Positions 4,719 through 62,035 of a DNA stretch of 64,000 bases are shown here, piece after piece. Within the stretch, counting starts at the first letter, position 1. Every line of letters starts with the position of its first letter. The position numbers were made by a program, and so were the translations under genes. The notes under the pieces are model-generated. The model did not search any database. It was not told where the DNA came from and saw nothing but the letters and a program-made list of their open reading frames with translations. This DNA is from Octopus bimaculoides (lineage: Eukaryota): positions 63,143,798 through 63,207,797 of the forward strand of contig NC_068982.1 of NCBI RefSeq assembly GCF_001194135.2, given 5' to 3'.

Positions 4719-7700
4719 TCATAGTACGTTCATATGAAAAGATTTCAATCTTGGCAAACCATCATTAGTTGTTATTGGTTTTATTGAACATTCTACTGCA
4801 GAGGGACTCGCAGTAATGGCTGCAGTCATTTTTACATCATCGAATTTGACCTTGTTTTCAGAATTGTTGATCAAATTATTGTCATTGTCTGTTTCGAGAA
4901 CATTTTCTTCTCTCAAAGAGAGTGTTTGACATTGTATTATGTCAGTTTTGTCCTCATTATTATTGGACGATGATATGGCTTGGCACTTTGGAGAAACCGA
5001 GTTGTTGAGGCTACTGTCAAAGGAGGTTTTATGTTTTCGTTGTGGAATGTTTGAGTTATCGACATCCGTAAGAGAATGACTCGCGATATGAGTAGAGGGT
5101 AAAGTAGGACTGGAATAATTTTTGTTTAAGCGGAACTGTGACTGAGTGTCTTCAGAATCTAATGTTTGTAGTTTGTTGCTAGCTAATGTATTTTCACTGA
5201 GGTTTAATTGCTCACACGTTGAGCGTAAAACCGAAGTAGTAGAATTGGATGACTGTGGATTTGTGAAAGATTCATATTTTAATATTTGATTTGAGTCGTG
5301 TGTCATTGATGAATCTGGTTCGTGACTTTTTACGCTAATTTCCTCGAGGTTAAACTGATCACTATTCATGTCAGTATCTGAATCAACTACATTGCTATTA
5401 TCGTCGAAAACAAACCTCTGAGCTAATATATCTGAAGTGAGTGAATTATCTGCTGCACTTACCATATCATCTGTATCAATAACAAAAGACTGACTACAAA
5501 GATCGTTCGTCTGAGAATTTGTTGGAGATTCGGAAAAATGCTCGTAGCAAGATTCAAAGTATATATCGGAACCGGAGTCAGATTCTGATTCAGGTTTTGT
5601 GTCCGATTTCTTAGTCATTGATTTATTGTCAATATTTTGGATTGTTTCAGCTTGACTAGATTCAGAGATGATTTCAGATCGCCTGTGTTCATTGACTTTT
5701 TTGTCTAAATCTGCATTTCTGTTTCGTCTTTTATCACCTTCGAAAATATCTTGCTGTATTTGAGATGATATTTGCTTTTGCGACTCAGATTGTGTATGGG
5801 CACCTAGAATCTTTTCAAAATGCCTTTCTGCCCATCTATTGAGGGCTGTATTGCTGAGATGTGGTATCTCATCTACTTCACAAATTTCAGAACAATCACT
5901 ACTTGCGTCTTGTAGTTTCTGTCTTGAACTTTTAGCTTCCATAAAGTCAATTCCTTCCTTCTTGTTATGTACATCTGGATTTAGTTCTGAATCATTTACG
6001 CTTTCCCTTTCTTTGTGGCCACTGTCAATAACATCTGCTTGTTTATCCTCTATAATTAATTCGTTTTTATCGGTTTCATCGATTACGTCTTTGAATTTAA
6101 TATCAACTTTATCCATGACTTTTTTATCAGTTGTTTTTGAAGAATTACTTTCACTATCTTCAGTCTCTTCCGGAAGGTCACCAATACTATGAGTATCTAT
6201 TTGGTTTTCTTCACATTTTTGCAATTCAAGTTTATCTTCCTTAGACTCATCCCCTTGATGATTTGGTGAGTGTGCATCATTGGGTGAGCTAATTTGCAAA
6301 TTCATGTTTAATATTCTAGTGTCAGCAAACGGAGTTTGCGTATCTGATGCTAGCGACCCATTTTTGTGTTCTAGCTTCGGATGGTCTTCACTGACTTTTG
6401 AAGAATTAAATGTATTTTCACCTGACAAACTATCCCTCTGGACAGAATTACGTCTTGATCCAGAGTTCAAATTGGAATTCATTTCAGAAATAATATTCAC
6501 ATGTTTTTCAGCCCAATTTTTGATACCATTATGACTTTCTGCAATTTTTACAGTTGAAGTAGGTTTACATTTTTTCTTTGTTTCATCATTATTTTGAGGG
6601 GAATCAAGTGTAGGATTAGTTGTCACATTAGAAGTCATGCTGGAAATTTTTCGTGCATGTCTCTCTGCCCATTCACTCACACTAAGTTTATTTTGTATAC
6701 ATTGCTGTTCTTGTTTTCTTTTTTCTATTCTCGTTCGTTCGACATCGAGTTCAGAAGCAACTGGCGAATTAGAAGCCATACTGGAAACTCTTCGAGCATG
6801 TCTCTCTGCCCACTCACTTACATTTAATGTTTTATTTGCATCATTTTCAAATTGAACATTGTTAACATTATCTAAAGTGTCAACAGGGATATTTCTAGAA
6901 GAACTAATATCAGACTTTCCTTCTGAGATCAATTTTACATGTTTTTCTGCCCATTGACTTAATGGAAGTCTATTTTCAATTTTCTCACTGTCGTTATCAT
7001 CATTAGAGCTTTCACTGTTTTTGCGAGAATTAGTTTTCACTGGAGTAACTGGCGGAGTTATGAATTCCGAAATCAATTTCAAATGCTTTTCTGCCCAACC
7101 TTTCAGACTCACTTGTTTTTCAGTTTTACTTTCTTTATCGCTTGTTAGGGAAGACGCTTTAGGGCTGATTTGTGGACTGCCTTCTGTGGAATTCATGCCA
7201 CCTGGTAAAACAATTTCTGATATTGTCTGCAAATGACGTTCTGCCCATTCATTTAGACTAAGACTTGTTTTGGACGGACTATTGGGTGTGTCTGTATTGG
7301 TGTTTTCTTGCTTAGGTTGAATTTTATTTGGTGATAATCTTATGTCTTTTGATTCCTTTCTCGAATTAATTGTCGGAGGTATGTTGCTGCCGGAGCTAGT
7401 TCGTGAGTTTTTGGACTCAGATAAAGGAGTTGATGAAAACTGCGGATTTCTTAATCCAATTTTACTGAAATGTTCATTAATAGCTTTCTTTGATTGTAGG
7501 AAAGACGGACTGCTTGTGACAATGCTTGTCTCAGCACAGCATAAAGAGGAATTTCTACGATTATTGTCTCTTGAATCTTTAGTATATTCTGGGCTAGTTG
7601 ATTTAGTATTTTCGTGTCTCCCTGGGGAGATTTGAGATGATTTGTAAGGGTAGATTGGGGCTCCAGGAAGTGGTATAATTGGACGAGCACCCATACTCAT

Positions 7701-9200
7701 TCTGAATGCTGATTTTGAGAAATGTTCTTCCATTAGCTTTCTAGACTCCAAAAAAGAGGCACTACGATTTACAACTGACTCTTCATTAGAGTCCATTCTG
7801 TGTGGTTTTTTAATTCCAACGCTTGGTTCCCGATCATCTTTTCTTTCCTGTGGATTTAATTTTTTGTTGAGTTTTTGAACTAATTCTGAATGTAATGCCT
7901 GAACATTAACAGGCAAATTACTATGTTCGTTTGACTTCGAATTATTTAGTGAACTGTAGTCAGATCTTTTATTTAGAATCGAATTTTGCGAAACATTCTT
8001 CATTGACGCTGTGTCATGGGAAGAATCTTTCAAAAACATACAATTCTTTTCTTTCTCCTTAACCGAGGTGATAATAATTAATTCTTCTTCACCAAGATAG
8101 TCAAGTGAGTCACTCCGTTGACGTCCCAAGGCTAACGTGACAGATGGTTTGGTGTTTGCTGGACGGTTACCATGACTGTGTTTACTGTTAATGTCTACTT
8201 CTTGTCTATTCACGCCGTTTTTACATTTCCGATCAAAAGAAGACAAACTCTTTGGATACAGAGTATGTGTCTCCTCCCGTCTATTGTCTGAAGACTTCAA
8301 TGTATTTTGCGAGAGTTTGTGCGGTAAGATATTGATATCATTGGTTTTGTTTTTACATGTGCCACTTGTCTCTTGGTTGTTCAGTTGTGATTCTTTAACA
8401 TAAGATTCTTTACAATTTTCAAAGATATTAATATCCTCAAATGACGGTATATTCATGTTCTTTACCTCAATATTGTTTACGCTCCTTGTTTCGCTTGAAC
8501 TATTTACCTGCTTGTTAGATTTATCAAACAGTTCGTGGAACTCTTCTGCACTCACATAATGATTCTGACCATATTGGTCTTTATAAATATAATAACCTCC
8601 TTCCGATTCTTCATATTCATAACTAGCATTGTCGTAACCAGTGACAACGCCTTTCTTTAACCTGCATCTATATCTCGCAGCGTTTCCTTCCCTTTGACTG
8701 GGACTTGTTTTAGATGGAATCGTGATAATTACTTCATCTTCATTGTCTTCTCCTTCTTCTTCTTCTTCTTCTTCTTCTTCTTCTTCTTCTTCTTCTTCGT
8801 CTTCTTCTTCTTCTCCTTCTTCTTCTTCTTCTTCTTCTTCTTCTTCTTCTTCTTCTTCTGCTTCTGCTTCTTCGTCCTCATGTTTCCTTCCTTCCTCCTG
8901 TTCTTCTTCCGCACACCTCGGTGTGGCTTCTGTATGTACCGAGGCCCATTTGTGCGTGTAAGCCTCAGGAGATGGTGTTTGTTCCTCACCTTCCGGTGAA
9001 GGCTCGAACTGCTTCTCGTTCACCGCTGATCTTTGTGGTGTTTCTATTCCTTCTTCAGCCAATTCTTTTACATCTGGCAGTTTATGTGATCCACGCGAGC
9101 AAATAAATTCCAAAATAAGTTTATTCACTTTGTCCGGTGCTTCCAACATAACCATATGGCTAGCCTCATCTACTATTTCCAGCTTCGATCCGTGGATAGT
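4719..9200 (-). CDS. ABHD8: ABHD8 terminal coding exon: end of the hydrolase domain (SHMVMLE, catalytic His) plus a ~1,460-aa low-complexity C-terminal extension
   Basis: Acceptor actattttag|ACT at 9200, phase 0. TIHGSKLEIVDEASHMVMLEAPDKVNKLILEFI continues without a stop for 1,493 codons to the stop at 4721-4719. An ORF this long in AT-rich DNA is not expected by chance. Confidence 0.9.
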   Translation of the reverse strand, partial: TIHGSKLEIVDEASHMVMLEAPDKVNKLILEFICSRGSHKLPDVKELAEEGIETPQRSAVNEKQFEPSPEGEEQTPSPEAYTHKWASVHTEATPRCAEEEQEEGRKHEDEEAEAEEEEEEEEEEEEEEGEEEEDEEEEEEEEEEEEEEEGEDNEDEVIITIPSKTSPSQREGNAARYRCRLKKGVVTGYDNASYEYEESEGGYYIYKDQYGQNHYVSAEEFHELFDKSNKQVNSSSETRSVNNIEVKNMNIPSFEDINIFENCKESYVKESQLNNQETSGTCKNKTNDINILPHKLSQNTLKSSDNRREETHTLYPKSLSSFDRKCKNGVNRQEVDINSKHSHGNRPANTKPSVTLALGRQRSDSLDYLGEEELIIITSVKEKEKNCMFLKDSSHDTASMKNVSQNSILNKRSDYSSLNNSKSNEHSNLPVNVQALHSELVQKLNKKLNPQERKDDREPSVGIKKPHRMDSNEESVVNRSASFLESRKLMEEHFSKSAFRMSMGARPIIPLPGAPIYPYKSSQISPGRHENTKSTSPEYTKDSRDNNRRNSSLCCAETSIVTSSPSFLQSKKAINEHFSKIGLRNPQFSSTPLSESKNSRTSSGSNIPPTINSRKESKDIRLSPNKIQPKQENTNTDTPNSPSKTSLSLNEWAERHLQTISEIVLPGGMNSTEGSPQISPKASSLTSDKESKTEKQVSLKGWAEKHLKLISEFITPPVTPVKTNSRKNSESSNDDNDSEKIENRLPLSQWAEKHVKLISEGKSDISSSRNIPVDTLDNVNNVQFENDANKTLNVSEWAERHARRVSSMASNSPVASELDVERTRIEKRKQEQQCIQNKLSVSEWAERHARKISSMTSNVTTNPTLDSPQNNDETKKKCKPTSTVKIAESHNGIKNWAEKHVNIISEMNSNLNSGSRRNSVQRDSLSGENTFNSSKVSEDHPKLEHKNGSLASDTQTPFADTRILNMNLQISSPNDAHSPNHQGDESKEDKLELQKCEENQIDTHSIGDLPEETEDSESNSSKTTDKKVMDKVDIKFKDVIDETDKNELIIEDKQADVIDSGHKERESVNDSELNPDVHNKKEGIDFMEAKSSRQKLQDASSDCSEICEVDEIPHLSNTALNRWAERHFEKILGAHTQSESQKQISSQIQQDIFEGDKRRNRNADLDKKVNEHRRSEIISESSQAETIQNIDNKSMTKKSDTKPESESDSGSDIYFESCYEHFSESPTNSQTNDLCSQSFVIDTDDMVSAADNSLTSDILAQRFVFDDNSNVVDSDTDMNSDQFNLEEISVKSHEPDSSMTHDSNQILKYESFTNPQSSNSTTSVLRSTCEQLNLSENTLASNKLQTLDSEDTQSQFRLNKNYSSPTLPSTHIASHSLTDVDNSNIPQRKHKTSFDSSLNNSVSPKCQAISSSNNNEDKTDIIQCQTLSLREENVLETDNDNNLINNSENKVKFDDVKMTAAITASPSAVECSIKPITTNDGLPRLKSFHMNVL

Positions 9201-9863: not shown

Positions 9864-10071
9864 CGCTTTCATTAGCTTAGCATCCTCTAATGTGGCAAAA
9901 GTATCATCTCGACCGTTTATAAGTAGTGTGGGGACGCTAATCCAACTGTGATAGACTTCATCGCCTTCGGGCCAGTCTTGACCATTGATGACATAATGTA
10001 GAACAAAAGACGGTATGTTAAAGGAAGCCCTCTTCAACATCTCGTTTTTTTGTTTGGTCTTGAAAGCTGAC
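9864..10071 (-). CDS. ABHD8: ABHD8 coding exon 4 (SAFKTKQKNEMLKRASFNIPSFVL...WPEGDEVYH...INGRDDTF...MKA)
   Basis: Acceptor cttttgtag|G at 10071, donor GCG|GTAGGT at 9864. 208 nt, phase 2/0. WPEGDEVYH is characteristic of ABHD8; candidate catalytic Asp in GRDD. Confidence 0.93.
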
Positions 10072-11713: not shown

Positions 11714-12334
11714 NNNNNNNNNNNNNNNNNNNNNNNNNNNNNNNNNNNNNNNNNNNNNNNNNNNNNNNNNNNNNNNNNNNNNNNNNNNNNNNNNNNNNNN
11801 NNNNNNNNNNNNNNNNNNNNNNNNNNNNNNNNNNNNNNNNNNNNNNNNNNNNNNNNNNNNNNNNNNNNNNNNNNNNNNNNNNNNNNNNNNNNNNNNNNNN
11901 NNNNNNNNNNNNNNNNNNNNNNNNNNNNNNNNNNNNNNNNNNNNNNNNNNNNNNNNNNNNNNNNNNNNNNNNNNNNNNNNNNNNNNNNNNNNNNNNNNNN
12001 NNNNNNNNNNNNNNNNNNNNNNNNNNNNNNNNNNNNNNNNNNNNNNNNNNNNNNNNNNNNNNNNNNNNNNNNNNNNNNNNNNNNNNNNNNNNNNNNNNNN
12101 NNNNNNNNNNNNNNNNNNNNNNNNNNNNNNNNNNNNNNNNNNNNNNNNNNNNNNNNNNNNNNNNNNNNNNNNNNNNNNNNNNNNNNNNNNNNNNNNNNNN
12201 NNNNNNNNNNNNNNNNNNNNNNNNNNNNNNNNNNNNNNNNNNNNNNNNNNNNNNNNNNNNNNNNNNNNNNNNNNNNNNNNNNNNNNNNNNNNNNNNNNNN
12301 NNNNNNNNNCAAACTTCTTACAGAGAATCGAACC

Positions 12335-13595: not shown

Positions 13596-15380
13596 GGCCA
13601 TGGGAACGAAAATGTGCCCCAACTATGCGAACCTGTTCGTTGGCTACGTTGAGGCCCAAATATTCTCAAGTTTCACTGGTCCCACTCCCGAACTATACGG
13701 CCGTTATTTTGACGACTGTATCGGTGCGACCTCACTCTCCCGCGAACATCTAGACTCCTTCCTCTCTTTTGTCAAACCTTTCCATCTGCCCTTCACTTCT
13801 CCTGCAATATCTCTGACACTTCTGTCTCCTGTCTTGACATTTCGGTCAGCATTCATCACTCCACTCTTACCACCTCCATACACTACAAACACAGAGACTC
13901 ACACTCATACCTCAGCTTCTCCTCCTCCCACCCTAAAAACACCAAGCCTTCCATCCCCTATTCCTAATTCCTCCGTCTACGCAGGCTCTTCAGTGACGAC
14001 CATGACTTTGAGACTAGTCTCAACTCATGGCTCGCCACTTCATCCTACGTGGTTATCTCCTCACCACTATCCACACCGCCCTTGCCAGAGCACACTCTGT
14101 GGACTGTGTACCTGCTCTCTCTCCTCGCAGCCGCCCCGTCGTCTCCCGTTTCCCCTCACCTACCACCCCACCACCCTACCTCTTCAACGCACCATTCTCC
14201 GAGCCTTCCGGCGACTCCAGTCTGACCCCTCCACTTCGCACACCTTCCTTAACAGACCCCTCCCCTCCTTCAAACGAGTCCACAATCTACGAGACNNNNN
14301 NNNNNNNNNNNNNNNNNNNNNNNNNNNNNNNNNNNNNNNNNNNNNNNNNNNNNNNNNNNNNNNNNNNNNNNNNNNNNNNNNNNNNNNNNNNNNNNNNNNN
14401 NNNNNNNNNNNNNNNNNNNNNNNNNNNNNNNNNNNNNNNNNNNNNNNNNNNNNNNNNNNNNNNNNNNNNNNNNNNNNNNNNNNNNNNNNNNNNNNNNNNN
14501 NNNNNNNNNNNNNNNNNNNNNNNNNNNNNNNNNNNNNNNNNNNNNNNNNNNNNNNNNNNNNNNNNNNNNNNNNNNNNNNNNNNNNNNNNNNNNNNNNNNN
14601 NNNNNNNNNNNNNNNNNNNNNNNNNNNNNNNNNNNNNNNNNNNNNNNNNNNNNNNNNNNNNNNNNNNNNNNNNNNNNNNNNNNNNNNNNNNNNNNNNNNN
14701 NNNNNNNNNNNNNNNNNNNNNNNNNNNNNNNNNNNNNNNNNNNNNNNNNNNNNNNNNNNNNNNNNNNNNNNNNNNNNNNNNNNNNNNNNNNNNNNNNNNN
14801 NNNNNNNNNNNNNNNNNNNNNNNNNNNNNNNNNNNNNNNNNNNNNNNNNNNNNNNNNNNNNNNNNNNNNNNNNNNNNNNNNNNNNNNNNNNNNNNNNNNN
14901 NNNNNNNNNNNNNNNNNNNNNNNNNNNNNNNNNNNNNNNNNNNNNNNNNNNGCCGAACACACACACCACCCTTCCTTTCCCCACTCTCACCTCCTCCACA
15001 TCCCAACACCACCACACCATACCACACATCACCACATCATACACCACCATACCACACAGCACTACATCACATCACACCACCACGCACACACTAGCACTGA
15101 CCACTTCCCAGCCCCACACCATCATCCACACACATACACATACACGCACACATCAAGGTCACCAGCCCTCTTCCTCACGCACATACATGCTCTCTTATAC
15201 CAACGCACACTCACCTTCGTTTTGGGATCACCACTATATAAGTATCTCCCCTTCTTCCTAGCTGTCCTGTGTGATCCCTCTGTCCGGCATTCGCCATGAT
15301 AGCTCGCTGGCCACCACTACACATGCCTTATTTTCTCTACTTGTCTCTTTCTTTTCACTTCCCGAATGTTAAACTAATAC
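13596..15380 (+). mobile_element. Penelope-like element remnant (RT fragment plus terminal repeat region), interrupted by gaps
   Basis: AMGTKMCPNYANLFVGYVE...YGRYFDDCIG is Penelope-type RT; frameshifted downstream. 15120-15310 is homologous to 25040-25240 (shared CACCTTCGTTTTGG(G/A)ATCACCA). Confidence 0.85.
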
Positions 15381-17239
15381 NNNNNNNNNNNNNNNNNNNN
15401 NNNNNNNNNNNNNNNNNNNNNNNNNNNNNNNNNNNNNNNNNNNNNNNNNNNNNNNNNNNNNNNNNNNNNNNNNNNNNNNNNNNNNNNNNNNNNNNNNNNN
15501 NNNNNNNNNNNNNNNNNNNNNNNNNNNNNNNNNNNNNNNNNNNNNNNNNNNNNNNNNNNNNNNNNNNNNNNNNNNNNNNNNNNNNNNNNNNNNNNNNNNN
15601 NNNNNNNNNNNNNNNNNNNNNNNNNNNNNNNNNNNNNNNNNNNNNNNNNNNNNNNNNNNNNNNNNNNNNNNNNNNNNNNNNNNNNNNNNNNNNNNNNNNN
15701 NNNNNNNNNNNNNNNNNNNNNNNNNNNNNNNNNNNNNNNNNNNTATATATATAATGGGACAAGAACGCAAAACATCCGGACAGTTAGGTGATACAAAAAT
15801 GGGACAACAAAACATCCAGATAGACGCTACAAAGAAAATAAGGACGGGTCATTCAAAGTTTTCTTTCCTCAGTCGAGTACCAGATTATTTTCGCAATTTC
15901 GGCTGATTATACTCGAGATTGCTCCAATCTGGCCAGCCCCAAGGAAAAACTAAGCTAAGAGCATTAGATTCCTTGGAAGACAGCAGCAAATGTATACAAA
16001 AACAAGGACGAAAAAAACAGACAATGTCACACAAACACAATAAAAATAATCACAGGAGTTAACAACAGGTGTCTTTCGACTAAGGACGAATTAAATTAAG
16101 CTGGCGCGTGTGGTAATAAAGCCTTAGGGCAGGGATACAAGGTTTCACAAGCACAGGGAGGAATATCGTCTGAATAATTGTTAAAAACGTGTGAAATAAG
16201 TCAATGCAAACCCTTTATTTTTCTCTGTTCCAAAAAAAAAAGCAAGACTTAAAACGTACCCGTTATAAACTGCAATCCATCTTTTCTAATAGTTATCTTA
16301 GGTTCTTATACACAATGTTTATGCATGAAAATATCTAATCACACTGCCGAATTATATACAACATGAAAATTAGTCCAGTTATTTCTGGCACTAGACTGTA
16401 ATTGCTTTATATACCAGTTGATAGACAAAAGGGTGGAAAGTATTTAAGTTTTAAGAAAGGCCACGAACAATAATATATGTTAAAGTGATCACCACTGTTT
16501 TCTTTGGGCTAAAAGATGCGCAAGAAATATTAGCGTTTTGCTTCTCACAGTGCAGTGCTACCAATGGTACTAAAGTAATCTTCGTTCCCTTTTCCTTCAA
16601 ACTAGACACGATTATTTCACAAATGAGATAGTAAATCTGCTTATATTTATAGCCGCCTCTACTTCGAAATATAGTGTGAAATTACTTATATATTTATTGA
16701 TGATGTAAAGACATACAGATATATGGCAGAATGCGCCAGAATAATTAATTTATCAAAACGCTGCATAGTGAAAATGCCCTTTCTTTTTTTAGCTTAGTTG
16801 CTAGTTTGCAGCATTTGCCACAACTATTAAATAAATATATATCTTCTCAGTTAAATGCAATGCAGAATCATGGCGACTGGCACTTTGTACAGAAATCTAT
16901 TTCAACTGACCAGCAATAGCAAGATGGCATCTATTGCATTTTTGGCAAAGACGTGTAGTTTTAGTTGGTGAAGACTTATATGCTTGTTTTGATTTATGTA
17001 CATACAATAGTTAAGAAGATTTAAGTTAGAAACCCAAACTCGATTAGAAGCTGAACATATTAATATATTCCATGCGTCTTGTTTTGATTTTATATAATTA
17101 CTGCGATTCTCTTTAAAATATATATTACCTTCGTGTTTGTCTATCTTTTCTTTTTAGATCCGATTTGAGGCAGTAGTTGGATATCTAGTTCAGTGTATAA
17201 TGGGATATTACTATATACTTGTATCAGTATCTCCATAAA

Positions 17240-30008: not shown

Positions 30009-31870
30009 TGACATTTGGTAGTTTGCTCAGGTGCTCTCTTTGTTGGTGTTGGGAAAGTATAGACATTTCCCATTAGTGTTTGCCTTGTATGTTGTGTGCG
30101 TAATGCGATTTATGTTTTTCTGCTGGTTGTCCTACCTGTAGAGTACATGTATTTTTTTTAGATATTTACTGTATAGAGTGTACCTTGTGCTTGTGGATTA
30201 TTTTATTCGGTTTGTGCTATTGAAGGGATGGTAAACTCGGCATTCTGAGCAACTTGTGGTGGCTTGTGTTCCCAGCAAGTCTTTTTGTGAGGGAGGCTGT
30301 ATATGCAGCAATTTATGTACTGAGCTGCCCTGTCCTCTGCCATACTTTTACAAGTATTCTGTTGGTGCTAGTCTGCTGCATCAAGACATTATGTGATCGA
30401 TTGTCTCTGGGAGCTCTCCGCATAAGCGGCATGATGAGTCATTTTCATATTTCAGGACATTACTCTGGTAATCCTTGTTGGAAAGGACTGATCCTAAGCA
30501 TCAATGATATACCCTTCAGTTTCCGGTTTCAGACCGGAGGAGCATGAGAACCACTGATGTGTAAGGGCTTAATGAACATCATGGTCCCTGATTCAAGTCG
30601 GGTATTTACCATGTAGCGACCATTGTTCCAATTTCTTCTTAATATCTTGGAGGTTGGATTGTTTGGCTACGGTTTTCATTTGTTGTGCCTTGTCTGTTGG
30701 GGATATATTTACTTATGGTAGTGGCGCGTCTAGTTGTATTTCTAGGAGGTATATTTTCGAGTTTTTAGTCACTGAGTGCAACTTCTAGGTATCTTCATGT
30801 TTCAGAGTCAGTTTTAATATCCAGTGGTTTGTTTGTTGCAAGTAGGTAGAAAGGCCCATGGTTGTAATTTTCAATGAAAGTTAGGACTGTATCAACCTCT
30901 GACCGCCTTCTTTTCCCGGAAAGTATGTTTTGTTTGTGTGATGTATATGGTGCATTGTCATCAGCTTTCGTATTCTGACATCAACTTTGTTGATTTCAGA
31001 GAGAAACTAGTTTATAATCTTGAAGCTATATATGATTAAAGGCATGAATACTATTTATGACCCCAATTTTGTTTTTGGCGTTCAACTCGGTTTTCAGAAT
31101 GGCACTCACTCCTTAACTTTTCTTTGGTTAGTGAGCGTTTAATCCTATTTCCTTCACATACATTTAGATACTTGTAATTACCCTGAGGTTCTAATTCTTC
31201 TATCTCGGTGTGTACCAAAGGTGATGTTACATGTGTTTGATTGTTTTCCCTTAGTAAATGTTGCCTTGGCGCATTTGTCAAGCCCAAATTTCATCTTGAT
31301 GCTATCACTTAATTGCTTGACTGTGTATTGGAATGCCTGCAGTTATTGGTCATTTTTTTGTGAACAAGTCATCCATGTAGAGATGACAAACTGTTTTTCC
31401 ATAGGCACTGTATCCATAATTTGTTTCATTCAAGAGTTTACTAAGAGGAAACCGTGCAAAACAGAGTAACAAAGGAGATAATGAGTATCCTCGAGAGATT
31501 CCACAATCAATATTGAGTTGTCCGGTGTTTATAGTTGTCGTGTCAATGTTGAAAATTAATGTAGTTTTTCAGAGCTTCGTGATGCGAGATACACACTTTC
31601 TCATTACTGGCGAGAGTTTAAACATCTCCAAGCATTCATTTATCCAACTGTGAGGAAGACTATCAAAGTCCCTTTTGTAGTCTATCTAGGCCACTAAAAG
31701 ATGCTTTTTCCTGCTGTGAGAGTTTTCTGAATTCATTCTTTTACTGAACAGTTAATATCTGCATTAACCCCCACCTTTACATATTTTTTGTTCATCAGAG
31801 ATGATGTTGCTGATGAGAAAAGCACATGTACATTCCATTAGGAGATATGTAAGGGTATTGTACATTGTTG
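29335..31870 (-). mobile_element. R4/Dong-like LINE remnant (RT plus REL endonuclease), interrupted by a SINE and microsatellites
   Basis: IDYK..FDSLPHSW, HLYMDDL, MKFGLDKCAKATF, LIDISIPTDDNVSLKETEK..KYKDL.IE, LGTAHIL; multiple stops and frameshifts. Confidence 0.8.
29772..29950 (+). mobile_element. SINE family A copy nested in the R4/Dong remnant
   Basis: CAACTTTGCCTTTCACCCTTTCGGATCGATAAATTAAGTACCAG...ATAATCGACTAG. Confidence 0.75.
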
Positions 31871-34101: not shown

Positions 34102-34119
34102 NNNNNNNNNNNNNNNNNN

Positions 34120-40110: not shown

Positions 40111-40278
40111 TTTTCAAAGACCTGGTCCAAGCATGGTCGGATACAGGAAACAATCCATAAAGGCAGAGCAAAAATCCCAATTTCTGGTGCTAGAGGAATC
40201 GGTCCACCACCACTTATCATGATAAGCCTCCAGACACGCCTGGCTCGTTCACGAGCCAGTACCGTGGTGAAAGCACAT
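40111..40278 (-). CDS. ABHD8: ABHD8 coding exon 3 (CAFTTVLARE...IMISGGGPIPLAP...VFEK)
   Basis: Acceptor tatctcttttag|A at 40278 completes the Gly codon of GHSYG. Donor AA|GTGAGT at 40111. 168 nt, phase 2/2. IMISGGGP matches ABHD8 IMINGGGP. Confidence 0.92.
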
Positions 40279-43200: not shown

Positions 43201-43813
43201 TTAATGTATGCTGTAACCTTTTAATCAAAACATGACACCGTGGGTAGAGGCTGATATCTTACCATTTCTGATGGTCATAATTATTAAAAAAATTATTAAA
43301 GATTTATATAGAACTACATTCAGAATATGTCTATAAGCTATTGTGTTTAGACCTGGTTTAGACCTCTAAATGTTCCGTTTTGTAGATGCAATTTTTTCTT
43401 TCTTAATAAAGCACTCCGAAATTAGAAAAATAAAAAATCTGCAACAATNNNNNNNNNNNNNNNNNNNNNNNNNNNNNNNNNNNNNNNNNNNNNNNNNNNN
43501 NNNNNNNNNNNNNNNNNNNNNNNNNNNNNNNNNNNNNNNNNNNNNNNNNNNNNNNNNNNNNNNNNNNNNNNNNNNNNNNNNNNNNNNNNNNNNNNNNNNN
43601 NNNNNNNNNNNNNNNNNNNNNNNNNNNNNNNNNNNNNNNNNNNNNNNNNNNNNNNNNNNNNNNNNNNNNNNNNNNNNNNNNNNNNNNNNNNNNNNNNNNN
43701 NNNNNNNNNNNNNNNNNNNNNNNNNNNNNNNNNNNNNNNNNNNNNNNNNNNNNNNNNNNNNNNNNNNNNNNNNNNNNNNNNNNNNNNNNNNNNNNNNNNN
43801 NNNNNNNNNNNNN

Positions 43814-46147: not shown

Positions 46148-46481
46148 CCATATGAATGTCCGATGATTAAATTTTTCTTTTTGCAATATCTGTCAAAAAT
46201 TGCAAGGACATCGGCCAAAATCTCTCGGAAATGGTAAGCTCTCTTTTTTAATGGAATTTCACTCATACCATGACCGATTAGATCAGGAGCCACAATTTCG
46301 AAACCGAGGCTGGAGAAATAACTGATTTGTGTCTGCCAAATATCGGAACTTCCACCGACGCCATGAAAAAAGAACAGAACGATATTCTTCAAGGCCGAGG
46401 CTGAACGTATACCCATTTTGAAAAGCATTCTCTTTTGGTCTTTGGATAATCCAGAGAAAAGTACATTCGACCTCGCCTTGC
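46148..46481 (-). CDS. ABHD8: ABHD8 coding exon 2: HGVGGS oxyanion region, APDLIGHG, nucleophile elbow GHSYG
   Basis: Acceptor ttctttaag|G at 46481, donor GG|GTAAGT at 46148. Its 334 nt fit phase 1 in and phase 2 out. Translation IVLFFFHGVGGSSDIWQTQISYFSSLGFEIVAPDLIGHG...IIGHSYG is typical ABHD8; catalytic Ser codon at 46155-46153. Confidence 0.93.
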
Positions 46482-48595: not shown

Positions 48596-48938
48596 CATCA
48601 TATGGGATATGTCTTTTGTGTTGAGCCCCTGGAGCATTTGAGGAAGCAGACATCTTGCTGAATCCATTCCGAACGTTGTTTTGGTTTGCATTAGGATCGG
48701 CAACGATACATTTGTTGCCGTAGAAATTGACACGTGGCACACGAAGTTCTACAGGCGGAAGTGACGAATTCTTGATCTGTTTTGCTTGCGGAAGTTGTTT
48801 ATTGCGCATACGTGGATTGATATGTTGTATTCGCAAAACCCGACCTTTGCGAACTTCCACCAAATCTACATCGAGATTGGCGTTCGGTGCGGGGAAGACC
48901 TTGGAAGACCGACGAGGTTTTAAACAGGGAAAAGGCAT
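48596..48938 (-). CDS. ABHD8: ABHD8 coding exon 1 (MPFPCL...VEVRKGRVLRIQH...PYD|G); the exon extends as 5' UTR to an acceptor at 49042
   Basis: VEVRKGRVLRIQH resembles the N-terminal VEVKPGRVLRVKH block of vertebrate ABHD8 (recalled). ATG at 48938 is the first in-frame ATG after an in-frame TGA. Donor G|GTATG at 48596/48595 (phase 1). Upstream acceptor tttctttatctttccag| at 49043/49042. Confidence 0.8.
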
Positions 48939-54456: not shown

Positions 54457-55019
54457 NNNNNNNNNNNNNNNNNNNNNNNNNNNNNNNNNNNNNNNNNNNN
54501 NNNNNNNNNNNNNNNNNNNNNNNNNNNNNNNNNNNNNNNNNNNNNNNNNNNNNNNNNNNNNNNNNNNNNNNNNNNNNNNNNNNNNNNNNNNNNNNNNNNN
54601 NNNNNNNNNNNNNNNNNNNNNNNNNNNNNNNNNNNNNNNNNNNNNNNNNNNNNNNNNNNNNNNNNNNNNNNNNNNNNNNNNNNNNNNNNNNNNNNNNNNN
54701 NNNNNNNNNNNNNNNNNNNNNNNNNNNNNNNNNNNNNNNNNNNNNNNNNNNNNNNNNNNNNNNNNNNNNNNNNNNNNNNNNNNNNNNNNNNNNNNNNNNN
54801 NNNNNNNNNNNNNNNNNNNNNNNNNNNNNNNNNNNNNNNNNNNNNNNNNNNNNNNNNNNNNNNNNNNNNNNNNNNNNNNNNNNNNNNNNNNNNNNNNNNN
54901 NNNNNNNNNNNNNNNNNNNNNNNNNNNNNNNNNNNNNNNNNNNNNNNNNNNNNNNNNNNNNNNNNNNNNNNNNNNNNNNNNNNNNNNNNNNNNNNNNNNN
55001 NNNNNNNNNNNNNNNNNNN

Positions 55020-57082: not shown

Positions 57083-57598
57083 NNNNNNNNNNNNNNNNNN
57101 NNNNNNNNNNNNNNNNNNNNNNNNNNNNNNNNNNNNNNNNNNNNNNNNNNNNNNNNNNNNNNNNNNNNNNNNNNNNNNNNNNNNNNNNNNNNNNNNNNNN
57201 NNNNNNNNNNNNNNNNNNNNNNNNNNNNNNNNNNNNNNNNNNNNNNNNNNNNNNNNNNNNNNNNNNNNNNNNNNNNNNNNNNNNNNNNNNNNNNNNNNNN
57301 NNNNNNNNNNNNNNNNNNNNNNNNNNNNNNNNNNNNNNNNNNNNNNNNNNNNNNNNNNNNNNNNNNNNNNNNNNNNNNNNATATATATATATATATAATA
57401 GATCTCTGAGCGAGGCATAAACAGTAGCTGCACGACATCGTGAAGTGTATTTGCCACCTAAATGTAGCTAACAATTAAAGGTTGATGCTACTGTAGATTG
57501 TAGCCTTAGGAAGACATCTCCAGCTGACTATTGACTCACTATCTGTACCCTATCAGTATTTGCAAAGGGTAGTCATCGTTCTCATCTCCACCATGATA

Positions 57599-58106: not shown

Positions 58107-58366
58107 NNNNNNNNNNNNNNNNNNNNNNNNNNNNNNNNNNNNNNNNNNNNNNNNNNNNNNNNNNNNNNNNNNNNNNNNNNNNNNNNNNNNNNNNNNNNNN
58201 NNNNNNNNNNNNNNNNNNNNNNNNNNNNNNNNNNNNNNNNNNNNNNNNNNNNNNNNNNNNNNNNNNNNNNNNNNNNNNNNNNNNNNNNNNNNNNNNNNNN
58301 NNNNNNNNNNNNNNNNNNNNNNNNNNNNNNNNNNNNNNNNNNNNNNNNNNNNNNNNNNNNTATTTT

Positions 58367-61159: not shown

Positions 61160-62035
61160 TGGAGACGCAATGGCCCAGTGGTTAGGGCAGTGGACTTGCG
61201 GTCATAGGATCGCGGTTTCGATTCCCAGACCGGGCGTTGTGAGTGTTTATTGAGCGAAAACGCCTAAAGCTCCACGAGGATCCGGCAGGGGATGGTGGCG
61301 AACTCTGCTGTACTCTTCCACCACAACTTTCTCTCACTCTTACTTCCTGAATCTGTTGTGCCTGTAGTTCAAAGGGTCAGCCTTGTCACACTGTGTCACG
61401 CCGAATATTCCCAAGAACTATGTTAAGGGTACACGTGTCTGTGGAGTGTTCAGCCACTTGCACGTTAATTTCACGAGCAGGCTGTTCCGTTGATCGGATC
61501 AACTGGAACCCTCGGTTCTTTTTTAAAATGGGGGTCACATTTTTCATTAACGAAACACTTTGAAACTTGGAACACTGGTAGAATGTGTCATATAAAACAT
61601 CTTTTTCTCTTAGTCTTCTTTTAAAAAAAAGAAATCCATAAATTATTCCATGTTAAAGTTGTCGTATTTCTGTAATTTCAATCAATCACTGACGTCCATT
61701 CAACCGATATNNNNNNNNNNGTTAGGGTTAAAGCAAATTTAAAATGAAAAAAGCAAATAAAACGAAGAATCGTTTGTTTATGTAGTCGGCACTTAATGTA
61801 TATCGGCTGAATGAACGTCAGTGATTGGTTGAAATTATCGAAATAAGACAATTTTTTACATGAAATAAATTCGAATACAAAAATATTTTTCTGTTCTATA
61901 ACACAAAATAGATAAGTATACGGAGTTTGAAAGTCTTTCGGTACCAAAAACACTACGTAAAACATTAATGAAAAATGTGGCCCCCGTTTTAAAAAAGATC
62001 CGAACCCTCGACGTCGTAAGCGACGGAGTGCCATC
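61160..62035 (+). mobile_element. tRNA-derived SINE split by a MITE (SINE at 61160-61513, resuming at 62002-62035)
   Basis: A box TGGCCCAGTGG, B box GGTTTCGATTCCC; 3' tail shared with 32290-32450; the tail resumes after the MITE with a duplicated GAACCCTC. Confidence 0.8.
61514..62001. mobile_element. Non-autonomous DNA transposon (MITE) with TIRs and an 8-bp TSD
   Basis: Left end GGTTCTTTTTTAAAATGGGGGTCACATTTTTCATTAA vs reverse complement of the right end GGATCTTTTTTAAAACGGGGGCCACATTTTTCATTAA. Inner inverted repeat ~61674-61710 vs ~61800-61838. TSD GAACCCTC at 61506-61513 and 62002-62009. Confidence 0.85.

Follow-up and report, generated by a model that had tools for sequence, protein, structure and literature searches.

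A tandem array of W-A-E-[RK]-H amphipathic helices, a putative docking array, in the long tail of octopod ABHD8

Introduction

The DNA analysed here is a 64,000-nucleotide stretch of Octopus bimaculoides (NCBI RefSeq assembly GCF_001194135.2, contig NC_068982.1, positions 63,143,798 to 63,207,797 of the forward strand), hereafter the window, and all coordinates below are counted from its first letter. Its minus strand carries a gene for the serine hydrolase ABHD8, the last exon of which runs on beyond the hydrolase fold into a tail of ~1,450 amino acids (aa) containing seven copies of a short motif, W-A-E-[RK]-H. The locus raises the question of what these copies are, and what a hydrolase would do with them. 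The array is real, selected and not previously named, and its kind is a familiar one, that of a repeated linear motif, specific to one lineage, within a disordered region. The reading favoured here, in which our confidence is about even, is that the array is specific to octopods and consists of amphipathic helical docking motifs placed in tandem in a disordered tail, where they putatively recruit several copies of one protein partner by avidity.

The motif array in the last exon

The open reading frame (ORF) of the last exon contains exactly eight Trp residues, every one of them in W-A-x-x-H (8/8) and all except one in WAE[RK]H (7/8). Their TGG codons start at positions 8948, 7247, 7097, 6953, 6812, 6671, 6515, and 5834. 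Successive Trp residues in copies 1 to 6 are 50, 48, 47, 47, and 52 aa apart, and copy 7 follows copy 6 at a distance of 227 aa. The initial annotation, made from the letters alone, had listed seven peptides (LNEWAERHLQTISE, LKGWAEKHLKLISE, LSQWAEKHVKLISE, VSEWAERHARRVSS, VSEWAERHARKISS, IKNWAEKHVNIISE, and LNRWAERHFEKILG) with their Trp coordinates and spacings, together with an eighth, degenerate site (HKWASVH at 8948) that would place every Trp of the tail in W-A-x-x-H; re-reading of the ORF reproduced all of these exactly. The span that it gave, 5820–7260, is right in location and slightly too narrow, as the copies reach from 5805–5849 to 7218–7262. The copies are listed below, where L002 denotes a genomic Logan contig of sequencing run SRR11869394 that carries an octopod orthologue of the exon.

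7218..7262 (-): copy 1, LSLNEWAERHLQTIS; predicted helix
7068..7112 (-): copy 2, VSLKGWAEKHLKLIS; predicted helix
6924..6968 (-): copy 3, LPLSQWAEKHVKLIS; predicted helix, with Pro at -4
6783..6827 (-): copy 4, LNVSEWAERHARRVS; RRVS site of the basophilic-kinase type; unit duplicated in Octopus sinensis
6642..6686 (-): copy 5, LSVSEWAERHARKIS; RKIS site; core degenerate (WTKRH) in the L002 species
6486..6530 (-): copy 6, NGIKNWAEKHVNIIS; predicted helix
5805..5849 (-): copy 7, TALNRWAERHFEKIL; stands alone, 227 aa after copy 6; predicted helix H663-681 of the model
8919..8963 (-): degenerate copy near the hydrolase, AYTHKWASVHTEATP; W-A-x-x-H only, low hydrophobic moment, ~40 aa past the fold

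Given the composition of the exon and its eight Trp residues, 1.2e-4 copies of WAE[RK]H would be expected by chance, and none was produced in 5,000 shuffles (0/5,000). In a MAFFT alignment of the seven units, the sole invariant columns are W, A, E, and H. The conserved unit is ~15–22 aa long and has the consensus [LV]-x-[LVI]-x-x-W-A-E-[RK]-H-hydrophobic-x-x-[IV]-S-[ES]. No tandem repeat was detected in the DNA over the array by Tandem Repeats Finder (TRF).

Divergence between copies

Codons for the same core residues differ among the copies (GCA/GCT, GAA/GAG, CGT/AGA/AGG, and AAA/AAG). Across the 21 paralogue pairs, the proportions of synonymous (pS) and nonsynonymous (pN) differences were 0.61 and 0.07 in the five-codon core, 0.68 and 0.33 in the 15-codon motif, and 0.63 and 0.67 in the 21 codons of linker that follow the motif. 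The contrast for the core has a Fisher p of 3e-15, computed over pairs that are not independent of one another. Linker pairs aligned no better than shuffled linkers (mean z 0.5). The initial annotation had described the linkers as dissimilar, and the motif and its spacing as kept while the linkers drift; both descriptions hold.

As judged from these comparisons, the duplications behind the array are old, because synonymous sites are near saturation and linkers resemble one another no more than shuffled ones do. Recent duplication or gene conversion is excluded on the same grounds as the source of the similarity, since either process would have homogenised synonymous sites and flanks as well, and the core is held at the protein level by purifying selection. 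An explanation at the RNA or DNA level is rejected in view of the free synonymous differences between copies.

The host gene and its added tail

The minus strand of the window from 4719 to 9155 is one open frame of 1,478 codons (1,478 aa). This frame starts within a longer exon, which has its AG acceptor at 9200/9201. Four upstream exons join the last exon with canonical GT/AG sites and matching phases, giving a single 1,844-aa frame in five exons:

48596..48938 (-): exon 1 of ABHD8; begins at ATG and contains a conserved N-terminal VRKGRVLRIQHINPR element, as compared with the Patella and Biomphalaria N-termini
46148..46481 (-): exon 2 of ABHD8; HG motif and GHSYG nucleophile elbow
40111..40278 (-): exon 3 of ABHD8
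9864..10071 (-): exon 4 of ABHD8; catalytic Asp region (NGRDD)
4719..9200 (-): exon 5, the last of ABHD8; last ~45 aa of the hydrolase fold, with the catalytic His (SHMVM), then the ~1,450-aa tail to the stop codon; open frame and AG acceptor

The first ~30 aa of ORF 4719..9155 still belong to the hydrolase fold, and the first ~390 aa of the 1,844-aa protein are an ABHD8 orthologue (Pfam Abhydrolase_1 at 4.7e-24 with the exons spliced). All of the top ~90 database matches of the host protein are ABHD8, led by that of the cuttlefish Acanthosepion pharaonis (91% identical). The catalytic triad of Ser (in GHSYG), Asp, and His (in SHMVM) is intact, with S109, D223, and H251 forming invariant columns in a 12-species alignment. 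Both the ABHD8 label and the proposed tether to a serine hydrolase in the initial annotation are thereby supported. Vertebrate ABHD8 is an orthologous hydrolase with 44–48% identity, the same Pfam domains, and the conserved Ser-Asp-His triad, but the vertebrate proteins, like the others recovered (from a bivalve, gastropods, echinoderms, and a hemichordate), have 366–490 aa, end within ~90 aa of the fold, and contain no WAE[RK]H, whereas the octopod protein has 1,844 aa. The ~1,450-aa tail is therefore an addition.

The tail is rich in Ser, Glu, Asn, and Lys (Ser 14%, Glu 12%, and Asn 9%). Against the L002 orthologue it shows a synonymous divergence (dS) of 0.215 and a ratio of nonsynonymous to synonymous divergence (omega) of 0.46, with nonsynonymous divergence (dN) below dS at p=3e-13. 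The probability of so long an open frame arising by chance is ~4e-48. Together, these values indicate that the tail exon is almost certainly coding. An exact-sequence look-up of the window ORF returned no record.

The architecture of the protein bears on whether the helices might act within ABHD8, either by docking onto its own hydrolase domain, as an autoinhibitory element or substrate-gating lid, or by binding each other in oligomerisation or condensates. The array is joined covalently to a conserved catalytic domain, the degenerate W-A-x-x-H copy follows closely on the fold, and in composition the tail is typical of disordered regions that are prone to form condensates. However, the hydrolase domain is ~91% identical to that of the cuttlefish, for which no tail sequence was recovered, and no co-evolved groove is evident, since orthologues in other molluscs, echinoderms, and vertebrates are without the array. 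An intramolecular or homotypic role is considered improbable.

Octopod orthologues

When the last 1,200 aa were searched exhaustively with HMMER against 1.84 billion representative proteins at E<=0.001, only two proteins matched, both of them octopod orthologues. The first (P0121; 1,459 aa, 80% identical) is encoded on L002, which also includes exon 4 and the intron. The second (P0122; 842 aa, 90% identical) is XP_036356245.1 of O. sinensis, which bears the name "signal transducer and activator of transcription B-like." Eight WAE[RK]H copies are present in O. sinensis, the additional one being a 47-aa repeat of unit 4 with a linker that has barely changed; this young unit is direct evidence that the array grows through tandem duplication of whole units. 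In the L002 species there are seven sites, of which two have altered cores (WEERH and WTKRH). Across the three species, W and H are invariant in 22/22 copies. The 5-aa core is identical to that of the window at 31/35 positions (88.6%) in L002 and at 35/35 (100%) in O. sinensis, and trends lower in omega than the linkers (0.21 vs. 0.50).

Searches of other kinds gave negative results within their respective scopes. At the Acanthosepion ABHD8 locus (L001, the gene with 10 kb on each side, where only exons 2–3 are present), no similarity to the tail was found. A homologue search with the array and the exon start gave no match, in an index from which octopod tails are evidently missing, so the zero is weak evidence. 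The peptide TIHGSKLEIVDEASHMVMLEAPDKV is proposed as a tblastn query for orthologues of the array. In the literature, no paper on ABHD8 with a cephalopod was found, and the motif peptide strings matched only an author surname.

The variation among octopods would suit a functionless coding minisatellite, in which the similarity of the copies is a residue of recent duplication or gene conversion in a fast-evolving tail. Copy number varies between species, two cores have decayed in one of them, motifs and linkers do not differ significantly in their conservation between orthologues, and the omega of the tail is fairly high. Such an origin is nevertheless very hard to credit, as synonymous sites between copies are near saturation (pS 0.61–0.68) while core pN is 0.07, the linkers are no longer recognisable as related, and the DNA contains no repeat.

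Predicted helices

All seven copies (7/7) are found among the 12 windows of 14 residues with the highest hydrophobic moment in the tail. On a helical wheel, W0, A+1, H+4, and positions -3, +5, +8, and +11/12 share one face with His at its centre, while E+2 and [RK]+3 are on the side opposite the Trp/His face. AlphaFold2 places a helix on every copy (local pLDDT 50–88) and low-confidence coil (<50) almost everywhere else. The short amphipathic helix suggested in the initial annotation agrees with both predictions. The tail as a whole has the generic pattern of a helical linear-motif array, with short conserved, predicted-helical islands in low-complexity, low-confidence sequence.

The linker between copies 4 and 5 (ELDVERTRIEKRKQEQQCIQNK, window 6690–6780 (-), ORF aa ~793–822) is highly charged, and AlphaFold2 fuses it with copy 5 into one long helix; on this model, it may be a spacer resembling a single alpha-helix.

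A hydrophobic face that includes Trp could also insert into a membrane or lipid droplet, with Trp as the interface anchor, the central His conferring pH dependence, and avidity keeping the hydrolase attached to a lipid surface. In favour of this possibility, enzymes of the ABHD family act on lipids, and ABHD5 binds lipid droplets through Trp-rich arms. By the HeliQuest criterion, a discrimination factor D above 0.68 marks a possible lipid-binding helix and one above 1.34 a likely helix of this type; D exceeds 0.68 in 4/7 copies, but it ranges from -0.23 to 0.86, and no copy (0/7) exceeds 1.34. The helices are also short (~14–18 aa), with a net charge of only -2 to +1. Lipid-binding helices usually conserve physico-chemical character and not exact residues, whereas here residue identity is invariant, including the Glu and Arg/Lys of the polar face and the small Ala. 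Lipid binding is thus regarded as unlikely, if more plausible than an action within ABHD8. Protein recognition is favoured over it because of the strict Trp, small Ala, and His, the strict Glu and Arg/Lys of the polar face, and the shortness of the helix, and the pattern of residues suggests that recognition would be stereospecific rather than a matter of general hydrophobicity.

Comparison with known motifs

The initial annotation did not recognise the motif as a named repeat, and the database comparisons are in agreement. No Pfam family reaches its gathering score for the exon or the array, 18 single units gave 0 matches in Pfam at E<=10, and no PDB chain was matched by phmmer or by a profile search with the exon, array, or units. 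Several motif patterns were applied to the copies. The AKAP helix that binds PKA RII, in the form [AVLISE]xx[AVLIF][AVLI]xx[AVLI][AVLIF]xx[AVLISE], has 0 matches in 1,844 aa, and Trp and His occupy its small-aliphatic positions. No copy matches the W-acidic motif of kinesin light chain ([LMTAFSRI][^KRG]W[DE]), where Ala follows the Trp of the octopus unit, nor the LC3-interacting region (LIR) motif for Atg8 (Wxx[LIV]), where +3 is R/K. The centrin-binding or Sfi1 pattern, W1xxL4xxxL8 or its reverse, is likewise matched by no copy. The paxillin LD motif (L[DE]x[LM][LM]xxL) has 0 matches, the IQ pattern fails in the copies, and the LKK[TV] element of WH2 is absent from them when they are read by eye.

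Two of these systems nevertheless resemble the array in design. Paxillin LD motifs are also repeated helices of ~10–15 aa with the pattern L-x-x-hydrophobic-hydrophobic-x-x-hydrophobic, joined by disordered linkers, and in paxillin they are docking sites for helical-bundle domains; the key residues in octopus are instead Trp and His, there is no homology, and the likeness is one of architecture only. Sfi1 centrin-binding repeats and other Trp-anchored helices share the regular tandem arrangement and, in each unit, an invariant Trp, a basic residue close by, and a hydrophobic residue at -3, with probably one partner molecule bound per repeat. Sfi1, however, is one continuous helix, whereas the short helices in octopus are split by coil rich in Pro, Ser, and Asn, and the Pro at -4 in copy 3 limits the helix upstream of Trp.

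A more specific candidate is the docking site of the phosphatase PP2A-B56, LxxIxE, which is a short linear motif specific to B56 (PMC7108865). In copies 1 and 2, the C-terminal half matches it perfectly, Ser being the fifth residue (LQTISE and LKLISE), and nowhere else in the 1,844 aa does a strict match occur. VxxIxE is seen in copies 3 and 6, RRVS in copy 4, and RKIS in copy 5, so the unit might be read as a B56 docking site or, more broadly, as a kinase/phosphatase docking and phosphorylation module. Strict matches are, however, limited to 2/7 copies (4/7 when relaxed). Copies 4, 5, and 7 are without LxxIxE, and Val is not known to be allowed at position 1 of the validated consensus. The segment is moreover predicted to be helical, and the LxxIxE motif cannot explain the conservation, since the invariant W, A, E, [RK], and H lie outside its six residues. 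This identity for the unit is judged quite improbable.

The docking reading weighed

The comparisons show that a coding unit of ~141–156 bp was duplicated whole and in tandem, and that the linkers then diverged beyond recognisable similarity while purifying selection on the protein kept the W-A-E-[RK]-H core. Under the favoured reading of a protein-docking array, each helix would fold upon binding into a groove of one globular partner, and the six closely spaced copies with their outliers would provide multivalent, avidity-based recruitment of that partner to the hydrolase. Ser+9, with [RK] at -3 in copies 2–5 (RRVS in copy 4 and RKIS in copy 5), may permit control by phosphorylation. Vertebrate ABHD8 has been reported as a scaffold that recruits zDHHC12 to NLRP3 (PMC13625376). 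That report fits the docking reading as an analogy, not as evidence, and recruitment by the octopod array would extend the scaffolding role.

Several observations weigh against this interpretation. In the orthologue comparisons, which cover close octopods only and are of shallow depth, identity of the 14-aa motifs is not significantly above that of the linkers, at 84.7% vs. 80.1% between the window and L002 (Fisher p=0.42) and 92.9% vs. 91.0% between the window and O. sinensis (Fisher p=0.66). Degeneration of two cores in the L002 species indicates that single copies are dispensable. The WAE[RK]H array was not found beyond octopods among the 1.84 billion representatives, a search in which a short fragment with one or two copies would miss significance. 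The AlphaFold2 models were run on single sequences, and their confidence overall is low (mean pLDDT 52 and 44). That the exon is transcribed and translated is inferred from conservation of the ORF and from the RefSeq models of O. sinensis.

A bolder version of the docking reading, which we offer as tentative and on balance doubtful, takes the WAE[RK]H helices for a previously undescribed, octopod-born recognition module. This module would have turned a 400-aa hydrolase/scaffold into a giant multivalent hub that binds 7–8 copies of one partner, or into a His-gated, pH-sensitive tether, possibly with phosphorylation control at Ser+9. If true, it would clearly illustrate how the duplication of units within a disordered tail can build a new interaction interface.

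Significance

The array is a plain illustration of the way in which a multivalent interface can come about, through tandem duplication of a coding unit of ~47 aa, divergence of the linkers beyond recognition, and retention of five fixed residues. It sets octopod ABHD8 far apart from the poorly understood 400-aa ABHD8 of other animals, and the motif offers a handle for finding a partner of ABHD8. There is also value for annotation, as the O. sinensis exon is split into two RefSeq models, one of which is misnamed "STAT B-like." The scope is limited, as the array is lineage-specific and bears on no long-standing question.

Further features of the tail and the window

A second repeated peptide, with the pattern SFL[EQ]S[RK]K..[EN]EHFSK, occurs twice upstream of the array, and the pair scores 33.5 bits in self-comparison. 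AlphaFold2 also places helices on both copies:

7701..7763 (-): second repeated helical peptide, first copy, SASFLESRKLMEEHFSKSAFR; predicted helix H21-43; conserved in L002
7449..7511 (-): second repeated helical peptide, second copy, SPSFLQSKKAINEHFSKIGLR; predicted helix H111-126; conserved in L002

This peptide may be a Trp-less relative of the W unit, with the pattern hydrophobic-hydrophobic-[EN]-x-H-F. As this resembles W-A-E-[RK]-H-hydrophobic, the array may extend upstream by two divergent units. The degenerate copy near the hydrolase (HKWASVHTEATPR) weakly resembles KVAEWATPRGNKTKH, and aligns weakly with "VAEWATPR", in the short tail of ABHD8 from the bivalve Pinctada imbricata (P0003), and may be a lone ancestral W-A element that gave rise to the array.

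In the O. sinensis assembly (CM016860.1, L003 ~9530, equivalent to window ~7590), a 1-bp deletion in an AAA run changes ACTAAAGAT to ACT-AAGAT and breaks the exon up into two ORFs (529 and 897 aa). The split accounts for the two RefSeq models, one of 895 aa (366 aa from the upstream exons plus 529 aa) and the other XP_036356245.1; the deletion could be an assembly error or a real frameshift. A 15-aa segment, LEIETTE(I/L)LLTE(G/Q)TV, is present in O. sinensis and L002 and missing from the window at ~5110–5130 (-) (ORF aa ~1345, DTQSQ|FRLNK). It is also absent from the O. sinensis RefSeq product, as though it were a 45-nt intron.

Nearer the hydrolase, a (GAA/GAG)n run at window 8746–8873 (TRF period 3, 42.7 copies) encodes a poly-Glu tract of ~40 aa. 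The length of this tract varies, with O. sinensis and the L002 species having a much shorter one. Within the 30-kb intron that separates exons 3 and 4 is a decayed reverse-transcriptase fragment with a YMDD motif (window 31353–31568 (-); Pfam RVT_1, E=0.0027, under the gathering score), with broken ORFs nearby at 29.0–31.6 kb. Ten runs of N (assembly gaps) are located at 1583–2149, 11714–12309, 14296–14951, 15381–15743, 34102–34119, 43449–43813, 54457–55019, 57083–57380, 58107–58360, and 61711–61720, none of them in an ABHD8 exon. Dinucleotide microsatellites are abundant across the window and give rise to runs of the CA/TA type in the translations.

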